64,000 nt of DNA, from the NCBI GenBank assembly GCA_029953675.1, contig JAMWBK010000009.1, positions 1,054,001 to 1,118,000 on the forward strand, in the 5' to 3' direction. The stretch's first letter is position 1; each line of letters opens with the position of its first letter. Position numbers and translations under genes: made by a program. Below the pieces are notes generated by a model. It was not told the origin of the DNA and made no database searches. It worked only from the letters and a program-made list of their open reading frames with translations. This document shows, piece by piece, positions 29,819 to 46,131 of the stretch. This DNA comes from Rhodosorus marinus CCMP1338. Its lineage: Eukaryota > Plantae > Rhodophyta.

Positions 29819-32800
29819 ATGCAAGGGGGTGGTGGGGACGGATGGGCCGCGTCTTCTTCAAGTCAGTCTCGAGACGCAGAGTCCATGAAGGCGTTTGACA
29901 TGAAAAAGTTTAGTCTGGGCCTGCCCGGTGCTTCCCGAGGAAATGAAGACTCGCCCCAGACGAAATCCCACGCTGGGTATCTCGTGGATGCCGCAACAGG
30001 GCCAGGTAAGTGCTACAGAAACGGGAACCGTTCGAGTTCAGTAAAACGGGACTGGACTGCACTGGACTGCACTGGACTGCACTGGACTGGAATCCAAACC
30101 ATTTGAAACTTCGGGCTCTGACACGATTCGTTCACATGTCTACCGCGTGCAGGCCTCTCGTCGGAGCAAAAATTTGACACCTACAGCAGGATCAACGATT
30201 TCTGTGCCAGCGGTGGTGGGTCGGCTGTTTCATTCTTAATAGGGGAGAGGTTGCAGACCACTGATTTGAACAAGGCGATGCGTGTACTGGAATGTCTGGA
30301 GGAAATGATGAGGTGGGCTGTGTGTACGGGCTTCACTTGCGAGATTGTATTTGCTCTCGTTTCGATTTTTCTCACAGGCTGACGCGTTTACCAGGACCGT
30401 ACCGTTCTTCTACCGGTATACAGCCAATCAGAAGTTCTTCAAACGGTTGTGGAGATATATCAACCCGTACTATAAGTCAGGAATCATGCAGCCGAAGGCA
30501 GTTGTCTACCCAGTCCCAATAACGAGTAAGTGTAACTTCAAACATCTGTGCGGCCGGGAGCAATCGGCAGTAGGTCGTGTGGACCAGGCGACATTGTACT
30601 TGGTGGAGTATCGCGGAATGTTAAAACCTTTTGTGAACTGCGTTGATAACAGGAAAAGTGCTGACGCTTGTTCGAGCATGGGCGTACGACCTCCACAAGA
30701 TGTACGCTGGAAAATATGAACCCGCAGCGGCTTTTTGGGTGGAAAGATATAACACAAAAAGGGCAAAAGTGAGGATTTATATGCCAATGCCACAGTGTTA
30801 AAGCTGGCCGAATCGAGGATCTTTTGGGGTTTCGTGGCGCTGGCCGCCGGCTGCTTCTAACTGGGTCTGTCCTGTTATCAGGTGAATTTCCCGGAGCCTC
30901 CTAAGGGTGTTGGTCCTTGGGTTTGTCCCGTGAATGAGAAAACCGACAGGAAACTGAGGTCACAATACGACATCAAGGGGATGTCTGTTGATGCAATGGA
31001 GAACCTGGTAACGTTGCTCGAGTCGATTGTTCACAACAGCTACTCCGTGCACGAGTTAGAATCGAACGATGCTCTGCCGAGTCTGATAAAGGATGGGAGG
31101 AGTGCCATTGAGAGTAGGGACTCGATAACCCAGAATTTAGCGCGGGAAGATGACGTGTCGAGATGCATTGAGTTGAGTGAACGTCTGGAGACGGTTATTT
31201 CAAGGTACGATAGGGCGTTGGCCACTGGTGTCGTGCCTGACGACATGGGATTTTCGCGAAAGCACTCAGTACATGCAGAAGGGAGCTATTATAGCACAAT
31301 AAGGTCAGATCAGTATCCGTTGGAAGAGGATCCGGCCGACTATCAAGGTGGCAAATCTAGACCTTACAGCAACAACTCACCTAGGATCGTGCATAATGAC
31401 TACGAGAGGCCTTCAGGTCCAGTCCAGGTGAGTCCGACTGAACCATTGTAGACTGCTGCGTGACATTGGCAAGCTGAGACGTTCTATAGCTACATCAACA
31501 GGAGCATCCGGTTAGAGCTCCAAGTAGAAGTCCAGGAGCGAACTATCCAAGACAACCAACTCGGGTAGTATATACGGCGGCGCCGGTATACGCAGCACCT
31601 CCGCCTTACGAGTACAGGGACTATGACAGTCGGGATTATGACGAAGAGTAAGCTTTCTGAAACGCAACTTCTTTCCTTCTTGGCTTGGGCTAATGGGTCG
31701 TGGTCACCGCATGGCTTAGCTATTCGGACGAAGAAGACGAGGAGGAGGAAGCGCTAAGGAGAAAGGCTTCCGCCAAAAAGAAGAAGAAGAAGGAGAAGAA
31801 GTCCAAAGAGAGCTCCCCAGTCGCTGGGCCGGTATATACCCAACCTCAGGGGCAAGTGCAAACTCCTGTTCTGCCTCAACTGTTTCTGACGAATCAGGAT
31901 GCCTTCCAGCAACCGTACGTGAGCGTGATGGCGTCCTCGTCGGGAAACTCCAGTCCCGCGACAACACCTATGCCTTATCAGGTGTACAGCCCTACTACGT
32001 CATCGGGTCCTGGGACTCCCTCGCAGGTAAGTTTATGGTGAACCCTTTGCGATTAGGCGGAATCGAAGTCTGTTTGTCAGCCTCTCAACTTCTGCTTTTA
32101 CGCCTTGATAGCTTGCAAACGGGGGTTATGTACCGCAGCTTACGACGATTTACACCCCCGTCATGTCCCCACAACCATATGAGTCGGTATCTCCTGCTGC
32201 ATACATCCAGGCCAGTCCCGCAGCTGCACAACAGGTGCAGGATGCTGCCCTTGCTCAACAGCAACAGCTTACACAGCAGCACCTCGTGCAACAACAAGCA
32301 GTGCAGCAGCAACATCAGATGCAGCAGCAAGTGCAGCCCCAAGCAGCTGTGCATCCCAGTGTCCAACAGGTATGAAGTTCTTCGCGATCAGGCTATGAAC
32401 CATAGTTACCTCTCGGTGGAAATTGTGAACAATTGCAAAATGGCAGTCGCTGGATTTTGCTGACACGTCCGTTTTCCCGGTGATGCCTTTGTAGGGCCTG
32501 CAGCAATGAGGTCCTTTGTAAGAATTCGGAGTCAACTTTGCCGTTAGAAGACTTGTTCAGTGCCTGCGTAACTGCTTCTGTACTATCCGTTACGATCACC
32601 TTTACAGCCCCCGCTCGTTCCACTCAGCCTATGGCGAGCTGGTGGGGTAAGTACAGTTCCAAACCCGTTTTAACCTGTTGCAGGAGTGTCTATTCGCACT
32701 GTGGCGCTTATCTGGTATACTTCTTTTCGACAGTGCAGGTGACCGCAAACTGGACATTTGATGAGAATCAAAACAGATGGACTATTCCGCCTCGAGAACT

Positions 32801-32819
32801 GTGGCGAAAGCTTGCATAA
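29819..32819 (+). CDS. TOM1-like VHS-GAT endosomal sorting adaptor with a long Ser/Pro/Gln-rich tail (3' exons uncertain)
   Basis: VHS-like KVLTLVRAWAYDL...KRAKVNFP and GAT-like LLESIV...DDVSRCIELSERLETVISRYDRAL, followed by low-complexity Q/P-rich exons. Confidence 0.7.
30051..30090. repeat. (ACTGGACTGC)4 microsatellite in the first intron of the TOM1-like gene
   Basis: Three exact 10-mers plus one variant. Confidence 0.95.
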
Positions 32820-32935
32820 AAGTAAAGTTTGTAACGAACTTCAATTGGAACCACTAAATGTCGCTTGGTCTCTGTCATCTCTTTTTTGGGTCTTCTGTGC
32901 TGAAATGGACCCCAAAACCTGAGCTGGAGACCAGA

Positions 32936-33312
32936 CGTTCCTATCACGCGATACTTAGGAGTTCTTCGATGGTGTAGTAAGTTATGGGAACCCTTCATGA
33001 ACGGTCCGCCCCCTTCGCAGGTAGATCCGTGCAGGTCGAGACCGCGGCTTTGGGGGTATGACTTCAACAGAGTTGCCCACTGCGAGGCACGTTCTGTGGG
33101 GGTGCTTCCCCCACAGAACGTTGACGAAAAGACACAAGGTGGTAGCTGGGACGAGCAGAGCTCGTAGTCAGCACCGAAAAGCTGCGGGTGGGCCTTTGTT
33201 TATACCTACCGTCCGCTGACTGGTCTGCCTGCTTCAGAGAGTTGGTCGTCGGTGGGCGAACAAAGCAAAGAACAAAATGGGCAGTGTTTGCCCATTTTCT
33301 CGCGTAGGAACG
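32936..33312 (+). ncRNA. Candidate large structured non-coding RNA, family unknown
   Basis: A 13-bp terminal helix (32936-32951 / 33300-33312) encloses perfect 14-bp and 10-bp hairpins, an 18-bp bulged helix and further stems. G-U pairs favour the + strand. Confidence 0.5.
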
Positions 33313-33529
33313 GTGATTCCGTGGATGAGTCTTGCGTACACATGCGGGAGATCGTGAAGGATAGGAGGAATATCAGAGCGCCCGCAAAGGTGTAGCTGAG
33401 AAGTCGGGTGCTGCCGCCTTCAGTACGAGCCTAGAAGAAGGTCGTTGTTCAGGTACGAATTGATAAGCGACTTCGTTTGCTCCGTCCCTTTCTTTGCCGT
33501 CGATCCCCGAAATAGGGGTTGTGCGACGT

Positions 33530-34248
33530 GATGAAAATCATACATTGGTCCGTGTTTCTGACTTGTCAGTGATGGAGAATATGTATTAAACACTGCGTTA
33601 TCTTTCTGATTTCTAAGCAATTATGTTGGCTTCCTTCCTTGAATGAGTCACAGCTTTGGATATGATAGCTTTCGAAGACTTTCGTAGAATCTGCTCTGAG
33701 AATCACGGGTTTTCTGCTCATAACGCTTCTACACTAGAGTAATGCCTGCCGATGGATGTGGAAGCGAAGGAGCCTCCAAACTCCCCGAGTCTGAAAAGAA
33801 AAGCCAACTTAGTTGCTGCGTGAAGCTATGGGCCTACAACGGCCACAGCCACCCTCTGAAGCCTAACAAGAGTCTGATATTCCCCCAAAGCTTAATCCTC
33901 CTCCGTTCGTGCACTCTTTATATAAAAAAGCTCAAAAGCTGTTCGCACGAACTCTCGGGCGATAAATAGGCTATCGAAAGAAGCACAATGGTCAGCTCTC
34001 ACTCTGGGAAAGTCGCGCGCTGCCGTTCACCGGCATTGATTCATCTGTCATTAGAAAAGACACGCAAGAAAATGTAACACCCTCTTGTGAGAACCACTTT
34101 TGATACAAGATCTAGGGTCTTATCCTCGCCCGTATGTTAGCCATTAAGAAACAAGTTTCTCATAGTGATCAGAAAGATAACGCAGTGTTAAATACATATT
34201 CTCCATCACTGACAAGTCAGAAACACGGACCAATGTATGATTTTCATC
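33530..34248. mobile_element. Non-autonomous inverted-repeat (MITE/foldback-like) element, ~719 bp
   Basis: 81-bp inverted repeats at 33530-33610 and 34168-34248 with a single mismatch. No transposase ORF in the 557-bp interior and no clear TSD. Confidence 0.6.
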
Positions 34249-34362
34249 CTATCGCAAGAGCTTGCTCATCGCCCACAAATGCAAATGCAAAGGTGGATAC
34301 TATTTCGGACGTTGCCTCACCTTGTCAAGTAGTGCCTTATGAACCCACCAAGAGTAATAGTT

Positions 34363-36604
34363 TCACGAAGCAACTCGGCGTTGTCTTATGCCGGAGTCCT
34401 CTTTATCCGGTACTATTTCAGATTCCTCCCCAACCTGGTGTCCAATGTTCAACGAGGCATGCTCTTTTCAGTTGCTTGAGGAAAGATTGCGGCAACGAAC
34501 AGATATGCACTAGAAGCAAGACAGACCGGTTCACTGGCCACAGGATCGTCTTTCGTCTCTGCATCGTCCTTCTTGCTCTCTGATGCGTCCGGGTCGGCGG
34601 TGTCTCCCGTTGCGTTCTCCGGAGTGGCTGAGTCGTCCTCGTCCTCCTCCGGCCCTTCCTTGTAGCTCCTGTACAATTGGTAGGCTGCGGAAGCGAAGAT
34701 CGGAGAGAAGCACAGCAGCAAGAGGATGAATGTAAACGCGTGGGGCATGCCCGTGCTCTCCACCGCGCTCACTACGTTTCCATATCCGTTGTTGATTAGC
34801 AAATAAGCAAGGTTGCGATGGATTCTTGACATGTAGTCCTACGCAACACAATACAACGGACGTGAGAATTTGTTGCCCCGCAAGATGATGTTCCGATAGT
34901 CACCATTACATCAATCGTTCTCCCTATGTTTTCCAGCTTCGTTCCCGTTGACGTGGATTGCTGTCGTTCTGCTTCTGCTTCACCGAGCGTTTTCACTTTC
35001 CACGTCCTAAGCGCGATTTCCCCAGCTTCCCCCTCGTCCGTGCAGACCAAAACGTTGTCAAATCGAATGTTTGTATCCATTACCCACAGCTCAATGCCAA
35101 CAGCTGAAAACTTGAGCAAGCGCGGATTCTCCACCTGGAACGAGAGAAAGAGCAGTCAGCATCCTTCTGAATCCGTTCAAAGTATCCTTTGCTCGTCCTC
35201 ACCCTATAGTGCTCTGGGTTTGGTACTTTTCGTGGCTTCCACTCCCCGATGTACTTCGGGTTTTTAATCAGTTGAGGCGTCCACGCTCCCTTGTACTTCG
35301 GGTTCGCAACAAGCGGCGCTGTCCAAGGACCGCATCCCACGTCACATTTTGGATTCTGAATCAGCGGAGGCATCCATGCGCCTTCCTCCTGATCGTCCCA
35401 ATCCTCCGGTCTCACCGCCCTCACATCCGCGATCGTTGGCGGCTCGTCCTCCAGCCAACCCTAACGGACAAAACTAGTTAGCACCATAACTTACATTCGA
35501 TGACCACAGGCTCGTCGTGTTTTTACCTCTGGCATTTTTGCTTCAGGGTCTGCATGCATCCTCGGTTCATTCTCGTCCCAGTCATCCGGCTTCTTATCCT
35601 CCGGATCCGGGATTTCAGATTGATCTTCCCAGTCCTCGGGCTTAACATCTTCCGGATCGTCGACCTCCTCGGGCGGGGTTAACGGCGGTGAAAATTCACT
35701 CGGGTCGCTGTGAACCGAACATCAACGACAGGAGGTAGAGCTTCAACACGTGAACCGCGCAGCAAAACTGGTGCTAGTTTAGAGTTTGGAAACGGTGGAA
35801 AATAGATTTACCTGATTTTGCCGCTTCTGACAACCTCGTTATCAATCTTCATCTTAAATTCCTCCCCTTTAATAACGAGCGTGTACAAGTGAGTTTTTCT
35901 GTCCATTCCCGCGATCTGCGGAGGTCTCAGCATGTGGTGCTCTTCGAGCTTGCCAGTCACTTTGTTCGGGTACTGCCGTAGAAGCATGAGGTCTAGACAA
36001 TCAGTACAAAAGACCCTGCGTATTCCGTACCCTTTCCTGGCCCTAGTGATTGCTTCTTCTTGCTCACCTGAAAGATGAAGTGAACGCGATTGTTTTGCCC
36101 GCATCGATCGGGTCCAAACATAATAGAGTAAGGCAGCCCATCTTTAACCTGGTCCAGATCACTAAACGGGCTTTTGATCAACTTGAGGTACGAACCCGAA
36201 CATGTCAATCCGTGCTCGTACTTGACGTCGTACTGTACGACGAGTTCATCGTGGTCGGCGGGGTTAACCTCAACCTTTTGTGCAATGCCATAATGCTTTG
36301 CATCATTGGGGATCATCATATCACGATCTCCTTCCAGAACCTTCGTATCACACACACACACACATAAACAGGAATAAAACTGCTGTAAGAAAAACCAGAT
36401 CCTCTCGAAAACGTGGTAAGGCCAGATCAAACTTCCACTTACCCCTTGCTCAAGAGCAAACTTTCCTTGGTACTTCTCATCAGATGCATGAGTCCACGCC
36501 AGCTCTCCCTTATCGAACGTATCCAAAAACAGGACCTCCCCTTGAGATCCGCAAACCCAGATCGCCAAAATGGCGATCAACCCAAGCATCCTTATTCTGT
36601 ACAT
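34363..36604 (-). CDS. CANX: Calnexin
   Basis: Signal peptide, then LVVQYDVKYEHGLTCSGSYLKL, YSIMFGPDRCG, P-domain repeats (PEDWDDQEEGAWMPPLIQNPKC) and GIELW. It has a C-terminal TM and a tail ending GIRQRRVAS* (ends at 34449 if the last intron is retained). Confidence 0.93.
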
Positions 36605-38089
36605 CGTCGCTGAACTCATCGCCAAATCGGAATCATCAAGGAACAAAACATTAATCCTCCTCCTCACTTCATCTGGCACCTGTTACATTCCATGCAGCAC
36701 TTTATGCTCACCTGAATCCAAATCAGTTCTCTCAAAGAAAGCCCGAACTGTAGACACCCGACCCCACACGCCCACGCAGTCCTTCCAGCGTTCGGCGCCG
36801 CGTGCTGTTCATATCGCCGGCGTACGATGTCCCACTTTTGACAACATTGGGACACGACCTGTTGGAAATTATTGGGACACCTATGAATTGGCATTAAGAG
36901 GTGAGGTCGCGTGCCTACCGATCTCGATCAAGGCAGAATAATGAAATCACAGGAGTTGTTTGAAGGAGTTGATGATCATTGGGAGCTATCCCCTCTGAAT
37001 TTTTCAGAGGCGATAGCTCCGCGGGATTGTGACCTCACTTGGTGTCTTCAAGTACAGGATGATCTTCTGTTATCGCCGTCAAGATCTGCCTGACTTTGTT
37101 CCCCATCACAGTAGCAAATTGGCGGACGGCGTTGACCCAACAACCCATGAAGAGGCTAAGTGCGAGGGTTCTTGGTTGGCCTGCACTTTCTGAGGAAGGC
37201 GTATACCTCTGACGGCCGACTTCATTCGGGCATCCACCTTCCTTAGGAGATTCTGTGCGCTAATGAGCTACGCCGGTTTCTCCTCACCAAGCGACCTCCA
37301 CAAATCTCCCGTCACATCCGTGACCTTAGGCCAGACAAAAACCCGCCAGGTTCACAAGTCCGAGTGCGTTCGATTCCCACTTTATGCTAGCTCAACCTGC
37401 GTTTGTTCGCAACTGGTCCTCGCCGCTCTGGACTGGGTTTGCTTCCCGAATTGAAGACGAATCCTCAACATGTGACGGAGAAATTTGATGAGATCGGGTG
37501 ACACTAGCTCCGAATTCTGCCCTACTAGGACGTCCCCAATGTACAAGGATCTCCCTGCCTATCGCCGCCCTTGTCTCGGTGTTTTGTCCCAGTTCGCTGT
37601 CCGCGTAAAAACCGGTGAAGCCTGTTTGGGACACGCAAAGAACTGGCCTCGACGTGAAGCTGCGTTGAGATTGATCTCGATTAAAGCAGAATATTGATAT
37701 CATAGGATTGACTTGAACCATCTGGCGATAATGGCTCTCTATTATTGTCGTCAAGCATGGCCCCCTCTTCTCGTATACCCACAGCATACGGCGGTGGCTC
37801 TGGACCAAGAATGAAACAACAAGCCGTGCTGGTTCCTTGATACAGAAATCTATTCTTGGATCTGGTTTTAATCCAAGGCTACGCCATCTTGCGTGCTACC
37901 CGAACACCCAAAAGTATGGGTTTCAATCTTGAGCCTTGATGGGGGCGATGAAGATGCCTCAGTGGTTCGGTTCTAGAGGATCAGGTCACGTCGATGCGGA
38001 TATGCTTGTTCTTTTCTAGCGATGAGAAGTAGAGTATGAGATAAGCAGGGATTGAGGCCTGAATTCGCCTGGCGCATACACGGTTACGA

Positions 38090-39014
<925 letters not shown>

Positions 39015-39060
39015 GTTTAAGGAACCATTCCAAACTGCGTGATAAACTACTCGAAACAAA

Positions 39061-39783
39061 TCAGTCGAAAGAAGGCATCTCAATTGCGTTCACCTTCGCT
39101 ACCGAATCTCGCGTTGAAATCAGATCCTGCCAACGTTTCACATTCTCAAATCCTTCAAACTTGTCCTTAATTTCATCGCTCAGCGCTGGTGAGTAACTCC
39201 ACCAGTAGCATGCGATATCCGCGATTGTGAGCTCGTCTCCACAAATGTACTTATTCTCAGATAACTGCTTGTCAAGAACACCGAACAACCGTAGCGACTC
39301 CTTCATGTACCGCTCTTTACCGATAGGGTCGTCCACCTTGCTATAGAGGTGGAAGAAATTGTTCTGCCCAAGCATAGGACCGAATCCAGCCATCTGCCAG
39401 TACAGCCATTCCTTCACATTGTACCTTTGCTTTAGATCATTTCCACCGGCAAGCTTTGTGTCGTGCTTTTCAGCAAGGTACTCAAGAATGGCCCCGGACT
39501 CGAAGACCGCCATGTCGTCCGTCGTGTGATCAACAATCGCTGGAATTTTCGAGTTCGGATTAACCTTCACGAACTCATCCGAGAACTGCATATTCTTTCC
39601 GATATGAATCCATTTCAGATCATAAGTCTGCCCGAGCTCCTCCAGCATCATCGAAATCTTCTTCCCGTTGGGAGTCGGGAAGTAGTACAACGAATAATCC
39701 GCCATCCTCCTACGAGTGCTCAGCCGCCTACTCACAGAAGCCCCAGATACTCTCGCAATCGGACCCGTCACAAAATTCAACAT
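39061..39783 (-). CDS. Glutathione S-transferase, YfcG/Ure2-like class, intronless, with a putative transit peptide
   Basis: YYFPTPNGKK, NPNSKIPAI, FESGAILEYLAEK, WLYWQMAGFGPMLGQ and TIADIA. A 26-aa Ser/Arg-rich N-terminal extension precedes Met at 39705. Confidence 0.92.
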   Translation of the reverse strand: MLNFVTGPIARVSGASVSRRLSTRRRMADYSLYYFPTPNGKKISMMLEELGQTYDLKWIHIGKNMQFSDEFVKVNPNSKIPAIVDHTTDDMAVFESGAILEYLAEKHDTKLAGGNDLKQRYNVKEWLYWQMAGFGPMLGQNNFFHLYSKVDDPIGKERYMKESLRLFGVLDKQLSENKYICGDELTIADIACYWWSYSPALSDEIKDKFEGFENVKRWQDLISTRDSVAKVNAIEMPSFD

Positions 39784-42598
39784 TCGTCACCACAACACCA
39801 GAAATCCCCTTTCTAAAGCTCTAGATCCTCACAAACACGAACCAAAACCAAACTATTCCTGTCCTTGTCCTGCTGCCGCTTTATCCACCTCAACCCCTCT
39901 CACCCCAATCCCAAATCCTCTTTATAAACCCACTGTTTCCCATCAAAATGCCAACCGTTTTTTCACTTCTACAAAATCCATCCATTTTATTACCATAAAT
40001 CAACAATCCAACGATCAATTCCCCATTAATGCTCAGATTGGTCCTTTCATTCAAAATATATCTAAAAACCAAACATTCATCGAGTTCTACATTCTGATTA
40101 ATTTATTGGGGTTGGATTTCGACGGTTAAATTTGTTGTACTATTCACGATCACGGTAAGTTGATTGAATATCTACAAACCAATTGAATCGGTTTTGATTG
40201 GTTAAGGTATATGTGTGTTTTAGTTATTTTTAGGCAGAGAATGGGTGTGCGAAGCTGTTCGACAGGGCGGGGTGAAATTCTATTGCTGGCGGGGATGGGA
40301 GCACTTGAGGGGTTGGTGGGTACTCTGTGCGTAAGAGCGGGTTAGTTGAGAGCTTTTCGTCATGGTTTTTGGTCTGCACTCTGAATGCGATTCCTCGGAA
40401 ATTTCCGGCTACTCTGGCCTTCCACTCTGAATGCAACTTCTTAGTAATTTCCAGCGCACTGGCCTGCCAACCTGAAGGAAAAAAGTCCTTAGCAATTTTT
40501 GAGAATTGTGTGTTCTTCCATTTGAACTGCAAGCATCGTCCGGTGTGTAGATCAGGACAATGCCATGGACATTCCTACGGTGAACACTTACTTTTTCTGC
40601 TCCGGACGCCACACGCGCGACTACCGTTGTCTCCTGTCAACCCACGCTGTCTGGCAGCAGGGACAAAAAAACTTTTGCGTGCTTTATCCAGACTTCGAGA
40701 AAGGTATCATCCTTTTTGGAACAATCTATTTGTTGATGTGTTTGGTTTCTATGAGATGTTTGGTACGTGCGTCGGATGATAATGAACCCCGCAGTTTCTC
40801 TCACTTCGTTTCCTTGTTAGTCCGCGATGACATGTCAGTAAGTCAGCTCCTTCTCGCTTGTATTTTGATCAAAGTAGAGATATTGTGCTCTCAGATTATC
40901 GGTGGTTGTGGTCGAGGTATTGGCAGTGCTCAACATTGTCAAGCTTTTATTTGCCGTGCGAGGTGTGCACGACATTGGCTTGCGGGCTGGCGGCTTTGCA
41001 AGGTGGCACACGTCCTGGGGTGTTTTTTTATTAGGTTTTCTTGGTTGCAGCCTATCGTTGGGATACGCTCTACGCTGGCTACAGTGTTTATGGGCTGGCT
41101 CTGAATTGTCGGTTTAAGTTAAATGAGAGAAACGCTTGCTTCTTCCACGAGCTTCTCACGTGGGCGCAGAATCGATGCTAAAGAACTCAGGCACGGGACC
41201 GGATTGCACTCCGAATGTATTCCCCAGCAGTTTCCAGAAACAGTCTGCCTTTTGATCTGTAGCATCGTTCAAAGTAGGTCAGCGCGATGTCAAGGTACTC
41301 CTACGGCGTCCCTCTGGCAGAAAGGACGCAAGTACTTTGCATGCCAATCCAGAGCACGACTCTTGGAGAAAGGTATTATCCTTGTCGGAACAAAATATTT
41401 TCTTCTCCGCGGGCCGTAGCGGCCTTGACATCGCTGTTGTTTCGAGAGCGCAAAACCGTCCCCAGAGACTTTTCTTATCACCGAATATTCCCCAACGAGC
41501 GATTGCGCTCTTGTACAGTCATCATCCTGCTTGTGTCAGACAACCCCGCCATCTGACTAGAGACACACGGAGGCAGTTCGCAGGGTGGTCATCAATTATC
41601 CATCGACCTCCTGACATGTCCTATTTGCATCGTTGAGGGGGGGGGGGGGTGTTGCAGAAAGCTCACCCGGCTAATGGGTCATAATCCGCGGAGCGTGCGG
41701 CAAAGTTCATTCTCAACAACAAAATACACTGTCGATCATCAATGGCGATCAAGAAAGATCACCTCTTGCTAGGCTGATTTACATCCTCTCCAAATCCATA
41801 CTGTTCTCACAATCTCACCTATGCAGTCCACCAGACCTCAGCTCTCCAGCCCCTGACCCCGCCAAAACGCCAAAACGCCTCCCCGAAAGGCCAAAACTCC
41901 CGCCAAAATACCCTGGGATTACAATTTTATTTTAAAACAAAATATGTTGCAGCCACTTACAGGCAACTTATGCTCACAATAAAACGAAAATAAACAAAAA
42001 CATCCGAAACACGAATATCCGAATAGCGCGAAATAATTGAATCTAAATAAAAATGTGATATATTGGTTAATTCTCAAATAAATGGATTGTAGTAAATAGA
42101 ATATTTAATATTTCATGGTTTATGAATATAGGAAGATCCAACCTTCCGTGCTGGACAGTTCTTTGTTTGTTCGTAAAGTGTCATGTGGGCTTACCTTTAT
42201 GAGGATGGGAAAGTCGGTCTTCGGAAGAGGTTGGGGATGGAGGATGGGGACGCAGTAGTAAGTGGATGGAGAAAGGCTGGAGTGATATGTTTGTTGTCCT
42301 TTTTTCCGCTTGAACCCTGGTTTTTTGTAGTTTTATTTTGATAGCTACCCGTTTTCTATTTCTTGTTGTGGTTTTTTTTGGTTTTTTCGCCCTGGTTGTA
42401 TGTTAGAACGTAGAGTGTGTGAGTAGAGTGGTGCTTGGTGGGTTGACTTTAAGCGAATCTCTTAGTTCCAGGAGTGGGGTTTTGGAGTTGGTGTGAAGGA
42501 TGTGACTATTTGAAGCAACTTCATAAGTTTTTTGGAGGGCCTTTGGGTGGGTTTTTGGCTTTTTCCGAGGGCGTTTTTTTTGTGGGTTGGAATTTTTG

Positions 42599-45378: not shown

Positions 45379-46131
45379 TTTAACATACCATTCGAGTGGA
45401 TCAGCATTTCCGTCCAGGCGCTTTGTAATGAAGCATATGTTTTTTTGTACAATGCGCAAAAGTCCTGGTGTGCTTCACAAGAACCGATATTCAAGTAATT
45501 GCCCCCGTCACCGTCATTCGGGCTAGCTTAAGGGAGTCAACGTCGCGGTAAAAGCCAGCACAAACTGCTCGAACGACAAAGCTAGTCCAGATACTCAGAA
45601 CTACTGATCTACTACAAACACAGAGCTCATATAGATAAAATTTAAAATCCATGACCTAGCCATCAAGCTTGACTCTGAACCCAACAACCCAGTAGTCCGA
45701 CCTGACACTCGCACTCTCCCTAGCTCACCAAATCCATTTTGCCCATCCGACAGTGGAGAGAAACACAAATTATTAGAAAATGTAATATATTTTTATGCAT
45801 TTTCATTAAAACCAGGTATTCTTGGAATTCCCTTATACTAGGGGAATAAATTATTTAAATTTAATAATTTGTTGATATAGATATTAATTAACTTAATTCA
45901 AAATATTTATAGATGAATAGTGCTTCTTTTTTATCCTAAGGAGTATGAAAATGAGCGATGGAAAATTCGGGAAAATCCGTTTTTTCCGTGGAGAGGTTGG
46001 GAAGATACTCTGGTGATTTTCGGGGCGGAGACGGGAAGGGGTTTTGAAAGGCTGGATACGTCTATGGTCTAAAGCAGAATTGATCTGGTTACTGTTGAAA
46101 CTGCTGTTTTCTCTTTTATATTCTCTAGAAG

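Follow-up and report, generated by a model that had tools for sequence, protein, structure and literature searches.

A core of about 250 nt, located in the gap between two convergent genes of Rhodosorus marinus CCMP1338, is unusually structured and matches no described RNA family. We tentatively regard this fold as a structured module of a plus-strand, snoRNA-hosting non-coding tail that follows the gene NDN08_006786, a reading that we judge somewhat less likely than not. The DNA analyzed (the window) was a stretch of 64,000 nucleotides from contig JAMWBK010000009.1 (assembly GCA_029953675.1), on which a 662-aa open reading frame of the window is encoded; window position 1 corresponds to about base 1,054,001. 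The paper that reported the assembly describes the organism as a unicellular red alga of the class Stylonematophyceae (PMC10250338). A preliminary description of the window had singled out positions 32936 to 33312 (377 nt; here called the element) as a candidate large structured RNA. To our knowledge, the non-coding RNAs of red algae are almost unannotated.

Folding of the element and of its core

The seven helices (a to g) of the preliminary description are all present in the sequence where it placed them. On the plus strand, the element folded with a minimum free energy of -158.5 kcal/mol, compared with a mean of -131.7 kcal/mol (standard deviation, 5.9) for its dinucleotide shuffles (z = -4.55); none of 100 shuffles was as good. 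The comparison with shuffles that had been proposed as a check therefore came out in favor of structure. The minus strand gave -142.3 kcal/mol and a z score of -5.17. The 169 non-overlapping 377-nt plus-strand segments used as background had a mean z score of -0.10 (standard deviation, 1.21) and none reached -4.55; the lowest value among them, -3.44, came from a segment overlapping the element. A GC-regressed scan in 50-nt steps ranked the subwindows of the element second and third of about 1,270 on the plus strand and outside the top 15 on the minus strand. Ranking of the hairpins over all 64 kb revealed the perfect 14-bp hairpin (Table 1) as the best clean one, except for an 18-nt hairpin of 94% complementarity at 36982-37020. 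The shuffle z score, the background segments and the GC-regressed rank show that the region is unusually structured.

Other well-folding loci were observed in the window. The second most extreme 377-nt segment (z = -3.3) lies at 45618-45994 on the plus strand, in AT-rich sequence (GC content of about 0.32 to 0.36) just upstream of the 662-aa gene. The 18-nt hairpin at 36982-37020 precedes the calnexin start codon by about 400 nt, and its segment (36947-37323) has a z score of -2.9 on the plus strand. The adjoining subwindow at 36651 showed the strongest GC-adjusted folding residual of all minus-strand subwindows.

The preliminary description had called the whole segment of about 380 nt extensively base-paired. 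This holds for the 252-nt core but not for the 5' 111 nt (Table 1). The core folded on the plus strand with a minimum free energy of -117.8 kcal/mol and a z score of -5.73, a value that none of 200 shuffles equaled, and its centroid structure was nearly identical to the minimum-energy structure. Helix probabilities in the core ranged from 0.5 to 0.99 and were retained in larger contexts. Sliding windows of 120 nt located the signal mainly at 33060-33209, with a weaker part extending to 33390, and positions 32880-33089 were at or above chance. The local z score of -4.7 in these 120-nt windows was driven by the 14-bp hairpin. Helix g and the lower stem of helix d are missing from the minimum-energy fold because several CUUUG/CAAAG words compete, and alternative pairings of these words appear instead. 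The loops of the element are of neither the GNRA nor the UNCG type.

Table 1. Positions of the features in and around the element, in window coordinates
Feature	Position	Strand	Remarks
Probable true stop codon of NDN08_006786	32507-32509	+	C-termini of MMETSP orthologues
Intron in the 3' UTR of NDN08_006786	32647-32733	+	Best donor (11.8) and best acceptor (9.4) of the region
Closing helix (a), 5' arm	32936-32951	+	Partner 33300-33312; 7+6 bp with a 3-nt bulge
5' third of the element, no excess structure	32936-33046	+	z = -0.58; 58 of 200 shuffles as good
Structured core: interrupted long stem (6+8+6+7+2+3 bp) leading to a three-way junction with side and terminal hairpins	33047-33298	+	
Perfect 14-bp hairpin (b), loop UGCUU	33089-33121	+	100% complementary; pair probability 0.98
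Hairpin e: 4+5+6 bp, loop AGA	33140-33176	+	Pair probabilities 0.84-0.99
Hairpin d: 11-bp stem with three G-U pairs, apical part with CAGAGAG	33210-33258	+	Probability 0.54-0.63
Perfect 10-bp hairpin (c) ending in UUUU, terminator-like in appearance	33274-33298	+	Probability 0.89-0.94
Closing helix (a), 3' arm	33300-33312	+	In larger context, 33298-33305 pairs with 33342-33349 instead
Predicted 201-nt intron with snoRNA copy 1	33453-33653	+	Donor CAG/GTACGA (7.8), acceptor TCACAG (7.9)
U18/SNORD18-like double-guide C/D snoRNA, copy 1	33523-33613	+	RF00093; 37.9 bits against a gathering score of 41; E = 5e-5 (2 kb)
Calnexin 3' UTR intron with snoRNA copy 2	34045-34320	-	L007 compared with L006
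U18/SNORD18-like C/D snoRNA, copy 2	34165-34255	-	Rfam, 35.0 bits

The closing helix that had been proposed to seal the element stood up in part. At fixed geometry its duplex has an energy of -19.7 kcal/mol, which only 4 of 9,086 background pairs matched, a rarity to be read with the fact that the boundaries had been chosen freely, after looking. The helix was not robust when flanking sequence was included: its probability fell to between 0.02 and 0.29 with flanks, and to 0.02 to 0.04 when it was folded within 32734-33452 or 32836-33412. In these two larger contexts, a competing 9-bp closure (32992-33000 with 33352-33360) had a probability of 0.94. The unstable closing helix and the ordinary 5' third indicate that the feature is not a sealed 377-nt molecule but a core of about 250 nt whose outer limits are uncertain.

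The strand comparison revealed 18 G-U pairs in the plus-strand fold and 3 in the minus-strand fold. The three G-U pairs in the 11-bp stem of hairpin d become C-A mismatches on the minus strand, and 70 of the 130 plus-strand pairs are common to the folds of both strands. For the core, the minus-strand z score was -4.14, compared with -5.73 on the plus strand. These z scores and the G-U pairs probably favor the plus strand for the core, the raw energy gap between the strands being partly compositional because the shuffles of the plus strand fold better too. Over all 377 nt, neither strand stands out clearly from the other. A simple terminator scan flagged the 10-bp hairpin on the minus strand; on the plus strand the hairpin ends in T4. 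Three internal T4 runs were seen by eye on the minus strand of the element.

The fold could also be due to chance, an unremarkable piece of UTR having folded well by accident and caught the eye within 64 kb. The boundaries of the element were set with its sequence already in view, segments of this kind are numerous in a genome of 31 Mb, and the loci at 45618-45994 and 36947-37323 reach z scores of -3.3 and -2.9 as well. Nevertheless, such an origin is quite improbable. The z score of the core lies 4.6 background standard deviations below the mean of the window, and old neutral stems of 14 and 10 bp would decay quickly in a neighborhood where UTR sequence is about 75% identical between strains.

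Known RNA families and searches for relatives

Rfam searches identified no family in the element, either at the gathering score in the whole window or at E values of up to 10 in 2 kb and in 501 bases. The element thus matches no described RNA family. Covariance models of nuclear RNase P (RNaseP_nuc) and RNase_MRP were unmatched at the gathering score and at E values of up to 10, and those of SRP RNA, the spliceosomal snRNAs and U3 were unmatched as well. This agrees with the preliminary description, in which no conserved core of RNase P/MRP, SRP, the snRNAs or U3 had been recognized. An HDV-like ribozyme was rejected: only positions 43 to 75 of the model, which form one hairpin, aligned (18.3 bits compared with a gathering score of 50; E = 3.2).

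The layout of RNase P and RNase MRP RNA includes a P4 pseudoknot of CR-I and CR-V, with CR-V just before the 3' strand of P1, and a CR-IV of six or eight nucleotides; MRP RNA in addition carries a P8 GARAR pentaloop next to CR-I (PMC13184271). Like the element, these RNAs are 300 to 400 nt long and multi-branched, with 5' and 3' ends able to pair. Inspection by eye revealed a CR-I-like word, GAACGGUCCGCC, at 32999-33010 and a GAGAG apical loop at 33237-33241. The order is wrong for a P/MRP RNA, since a long distance separates the CR-I-like word from the GARAR-like loop, which lies 3' of it; furthermore, no CR-V was seen between the 10-bp hairpin and 33300, and no room is left for a 3' strand of P4. 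P/MRP topologies were tried by eye on either strand and dropped. The element lacks the CR-I/CR-V P4, the CR-IV of six or eight nucleotides and the P8 GARAR loop next to CR-I by which P/MRP RNAs are built.

Other classes were compared with the element in the same way. C/D boxes (RUGAUGA and CUGA) were absent by eye from the ends of the element, and Rfam placed them only in the neighboring U18-like genes. An H-box-like AGAACA is found at 33270-33275, yet no ACA follows the last hairpin by eye, and Rfam gave no H/ACA match. No Sm site was seen by eye in the element. Neither a CCCUAA-like word nor another C-rich word of 1.5 repeats that could serve as a telomerase template was seen by eye; the telomere repeat of the species is not given in the genome paper or its supplements. 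ARAGORN detected no tRNA in the window, although words partially resembling an A box (32970-32980) and a B box (33035-33044, one T short) were noticed by eye. Neither a protein-like reading frame nor an rRNA-like signal was found in the element.

A highly divergent representative of one of the known large classes (RNase MRP or P RNA, telomerase RNA, SRP RNA or U3) would share the size, the multi-branched fold and a possible terminal helix with the element, and the CR-I-like GAACGGUCCGCC and the apical GAGAG seen by eye would speak for it. The models unmatched in 501 bases even at E values of up to 10, the wrong order of the P/MRP elements with neither a CR-V before the 3' terminal strand nor space for P4, and the fact that by eye neither a CCCUAA-type or other 1.5-repeat template nor C/D boxes were seen make such a membership very improbable.

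Two short-lived candidates were noticed along the way. The octamer GUGUAGUA, by which U2 snRNA binds the branch site, occurs on the plus strand at 32972-32979, where the 5' third of the element is predicted to form a hairpin loop. It was noticed after the fact, with a chance of about 1% per element, and was dropped as probably fortuitous. A weak SCARNA7 match inside the calnexin gene (36298-36488, minus strand; 25.8 bits compared with a gathering score of 65; E = 0.037) is probably due to chance as well.

Relatives of the element were also sought by sequence. Two exact look-ups with its spurious open reading frames returned nothing, a 745-aa concatenate of six-frame pieces had no significant match among at least 8,000 candidates listed, and an exhaustive search with a 123-aa open frame gave a single match, by chance; these negatives weigh little, because a non-coding identity of about 75% between strains makes pseudo-peptides unrecognizable. 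Metagenome scans for the exact 14-bp hairpin and for a two-guide snoRNA pattern found nothing, exact patterns being too strict for strains so diverged. Prokaryote and viral scans were likewise empty.

U18-type snoRNAs and the tails of the flanking genes

The gap is bordered by an annotated plus-strand gene of 677 aa (29819-32819) and by the annotated minus-strand calnexin gene (36589-34363), so that the annotated coding ends lie at 32819 and 34363. The 1.5-kb convergent gap of the preliminary description is therefore real and even understated, the true upstream stop probably ending at 32509. The upstream gene, NDN08_006786, encodes a VHS/GAT-domain protein with three annotated isoforms (673, 677 and 656 aa). 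Its orthologues from two MMETSP strains, which were compared as proteins (the single JGI contig for this gene covers its 5' end), have the C-termini ...VQQGLQQ* and ...VQQGLRQ*. The window sequence past the intron 32370-32494 encodes the same C-terminus, which suggests that the real stop codon is probably the one given in Table 1 and that the annotated C-terminus runs into the 3' UTR. As annotated, the C-terminus of NDN08_006786 (32220-32819, plus strand) is at odds with what the MMETSP orthologues show: within the glutamine-rich exon, the model removes an "intron" (32220-32295) that shifts the frame and carries it past 32507-32509 into the 3' UTR. The UTR intron at 32647-32733 is present in all three annotated isoforms. 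The 3' UTR of NDN08_006786 is therefore spliced and reaches at least 32819, 117 nt short of the element.

Rfam analysis of the gap revealed two snoRNAs that had been overlooked in the preliminary description. Both copies align over the full U18 model with a guide identical to the consensus, and the boxes and guide UGGUCCGUGUUUCUGA of copy 1 correspond to the consensus. The copies form a 94-nt inverted repeat of 94% complementarity, with 98.8% over 81 nt in BLASTN. Beyond these 94 nt, the two introns are unrelated, which suggests gene conversion or selection on the snoRNA alone.

The calnexin gene model was rebuilt exactly from an enumeration of splice sites, and its 90% cluster led to L006 and L007, two transcript contigs of a sister Rhodosorus strain (JGI sample 3300016967). 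Identity between this strain and the window is about 87 to 93% in coding sequence and about 75% in the calnexin 3' UTR. In contig L007, ...CTTGACAAG is followed immediately by sequence found about 215 nt further on in L006 (a distance of about 276 nt in the window), and L006 retains the intron, including the 3' end of snoRNA copy 2. The spliced and the retained form show that snoRNA copy 2 is located inside a genuine spliced intron of the calnexin 3' UTR.

For snoRNA copy 1, an intron of mirrored layout was predicted, with the donor at 33453, the snoRNA 70 nt later and the acceptor at 33653. With a matrix built from 11 local introns, donor and acceptor each ranked among the top three sites of the gap. 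From the mirrored layout and the high-ranking sites we infer that this intron is used, which would imply a plus-strand exon ending at 33452, 141 nt after the element. Two alternative introns were rejected: the splice sites of a 601-nt intron around the element (32823-33423) score poorly, and an intron coinciding with the core (33056-33307) has a weak acceptor (3.9) and no branch site by eye.

The calnexin transcripts of the sister strain end at a point equivalent to 33844 and do not reach the element. Mid-gap, at 33918-33932, the window reads TATATAAAAAAG, and L006 has a T10 run in a roughly equivalent stretch of its calnexin 3' UTR. The TATATAAAAAAG stretch may mark the ends of the two convergent transcripts. 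Elsewhere in the window (38682-39784), the convergent GST and UPRTase genes, 47 nt apart, are joined in the single sister-strain contig L004 (JGI 3300016967), which shows that convergent transcripts overlap in this organism. The nucleotide identity of L004 to the window is 88 to 93%; strains named R. marinus are thus quite diverged.

Possible origins of the fold and known systems

The fold may represent a structured module of the plus-strand tail after NDN08_006786, a reading to which several observations lend tentative weight. The core is favored on the plus strand by its z score, its G-U pairs and its second and third rank on that strand only. No Rfam family, tRNA or protein-like frame accounts for it. 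The UTR intron of snoRNA copy 2 is spliced, and the intron of copy 1 has the same layout and high-ranking sites. Finally, the upstream transcript reaches at least 32819, and convergent transcripts overlap at GST/UPRTase. In the proposed arrangement, the element would be traversed by the VHS/GAT transcript or by a non-coding host transcript that begins in this interval. This tail would be read by RNA polymerase II and would contain at least one spliced UTR intron, with the U18-type snoRNA in another intron beginning 141 nt past the element, an organization that would mirror the calnexin 3' UTR on the opposite strand. The fold would be a cis-acting, autonomously folding domain within an exon, with a stable hairpin at its end. 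It could act on the processing or the stability of a transcript that would, without it, be quickly degraded by nonsense-mediated decay.

Several points count against the host-tail reading. No transcript spanning 32820-33452 was seen among the transcript contigs reached, and the mRNA would not extend to the element if it were polyadenylated near the TGTAA at 32830. The strands of the 377-nt segment are not cleanly separated, and the loops are not of the GNRA or UNCG types. Stems as perfect and wobble-free as those of 14 and 10 bp are equally compatible with selected RNA helices and with palindromes that arose recently at the DNA level. No precedent for a structured exon module in a snoRNA host was found.

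The element could instead be an independent, stable plus-strand ncRNA of an undescribed class, about 250 to 380 nt long, with its own promoter or cut from a host transcript; its 3' end would then be the 10-bp hairpin with U4, or the closing helix. The exceptional, well-defined fold would suit such an RNA, the terminal hairpin with UUUU resembles a Pol III or La-type 3' end, the closing duplex is as rare as described above, and the locus already makes small nucleolar RNAs. We consider this reading, including its 3' end, unlikely. By eye, no promoter-like element was seen upstream, and neither C/D or H/ACA boxes nor an Sm site were recognized; no family matched. A Pol III stop at the T4 of 33295-33298 would lose the 3' arm of the closing helix, which is unstable in context, and the 5' third is unstructured. 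The fragile boundaries, the absence of a visible promoter and the host context leave an independent gene of about 380 nt without positive evidence, and the context points to a Pol II plus-strand transcript running through. More doubtful still is a new class of structured nucleolar or nuclear RNA of about 250 to 380 nt in stylonematophycean red algae, derived from the U18 host transcript and stabilized by its own terminal helices in place of snoRNP boxes.

The element could also be a by-product at the DNA level without RNA function: nested short inverted repeats produced by template switching or local inverted duplication, a fragment of an unclassified repeat, or a nuclear copy (NUMT) of a non-coding region from a mitochondrial minicircle. 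Consistent with this, the 14-bp and 10-bp stems are perfectly Watson-Crick paired, the pairs shared by both strands amount to the 70 of 130 noted above, and a 94-nt inverted duplication is located in the same gap. Similar words (ACGTTC...GAACG) were seen by eye at the ends of the two largest inverted repeats. The GC content of the element (0.53 to 0.57) exceeds that of its surroundings (0.43 to 0.50), and the genome paper describes numerous NUMTs, 4% unclassified repeats and minicircle non-coding regions rich in GC (PMC10250338); coordinates of the NUMTs are given neither there nor in its supplements. However, BLASTN of the whole gap against the 64-kb window detected only the snoRNA inverted repeat and no second copy of the element. 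The element is without tandem repeats of the kind described for minicircle constant regions, and pure DNA palindromes would lead one to expect neither the plus-strand advantage of the core nor three G-U pairs within helix d. RepeatMasker values for the R. marinus genome are 0.03% for DNA transposons and 0 for SINEs (PMC10250338). Regarding target-site duplications, none was seen by eye, the flanks ...GACCAGA and GTGATTC... sharing nothing. The case for the structured mobile element that the preliminary description had considered is weakened: the element has a terminal inverted repeat but lacks a target-site duplication and a second copy in 64 kb, in a genome with few DNA transposons. Overall, a DNA-level origin is not a likely one.

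The locus is tidily arranged: two convergent genes share one U18-type snoRNA, of which each has a copy within an intron of its 3' UTR (a predicted intron for copy 1). Should the fold of some 250 nt prove to be conserved, one would be dealing either with a new stable RNA or with a structural module of a kind new to snoRNA hosts. If it is not conserved, a z score near -6 and a hand-picked closing helix alone do not define an RNA gene. The sister strains, with 75 to 90% identity, lie at a good distance for covariation.

Comparison with known systems revealed likenesses and differences in each case. The 10-bp, GC-containing hairpin followed by UUUU at 33274-33298 resembles the hairpin-plus-U-run 3' ends of bacterial intrinsic terminators and of Pol III/La-type RNAs. 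Unlike bacterial terminators, it is found in a nuclear eukaryotic locus and, unlike in Pol III genes, no Pol III promoter was recognized. With foldback elements and MITEs, the element shares a 13-nt terminal inverted repeat (CGTTCCTA..ACGCGA with TCGCGTAGGAACG) and a highly self-complementary interior. It differs from them in that its internal hairpins are asymmetric and do not form one long foldback, and in being a single copy in 64 kb without a target-site duplication.

In animals, plants and fungi, snoRNA host genes of the GAS5/UHG type carry intronic C/D snoRNAs between non-coding exons or in UTR introns. We know of no 250-nt domain with a z score near -6 that has been noted in the exons of such hosts. 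Each U18-type snoRNA begins here about 66 to 70 nt after the donor, and splicing was seen for the calnexin copy. The present locus resembles snoRNA host transcripts in having a single C/D snoRNA per intron of about 200 to 280 nt, downstream of a stop codon. It departs from GAS5/UHG-type hosts in that the host tails are those of two convergent protein-coding genes and that the two copies of the snoRNA are arranged as an inverted repeat.
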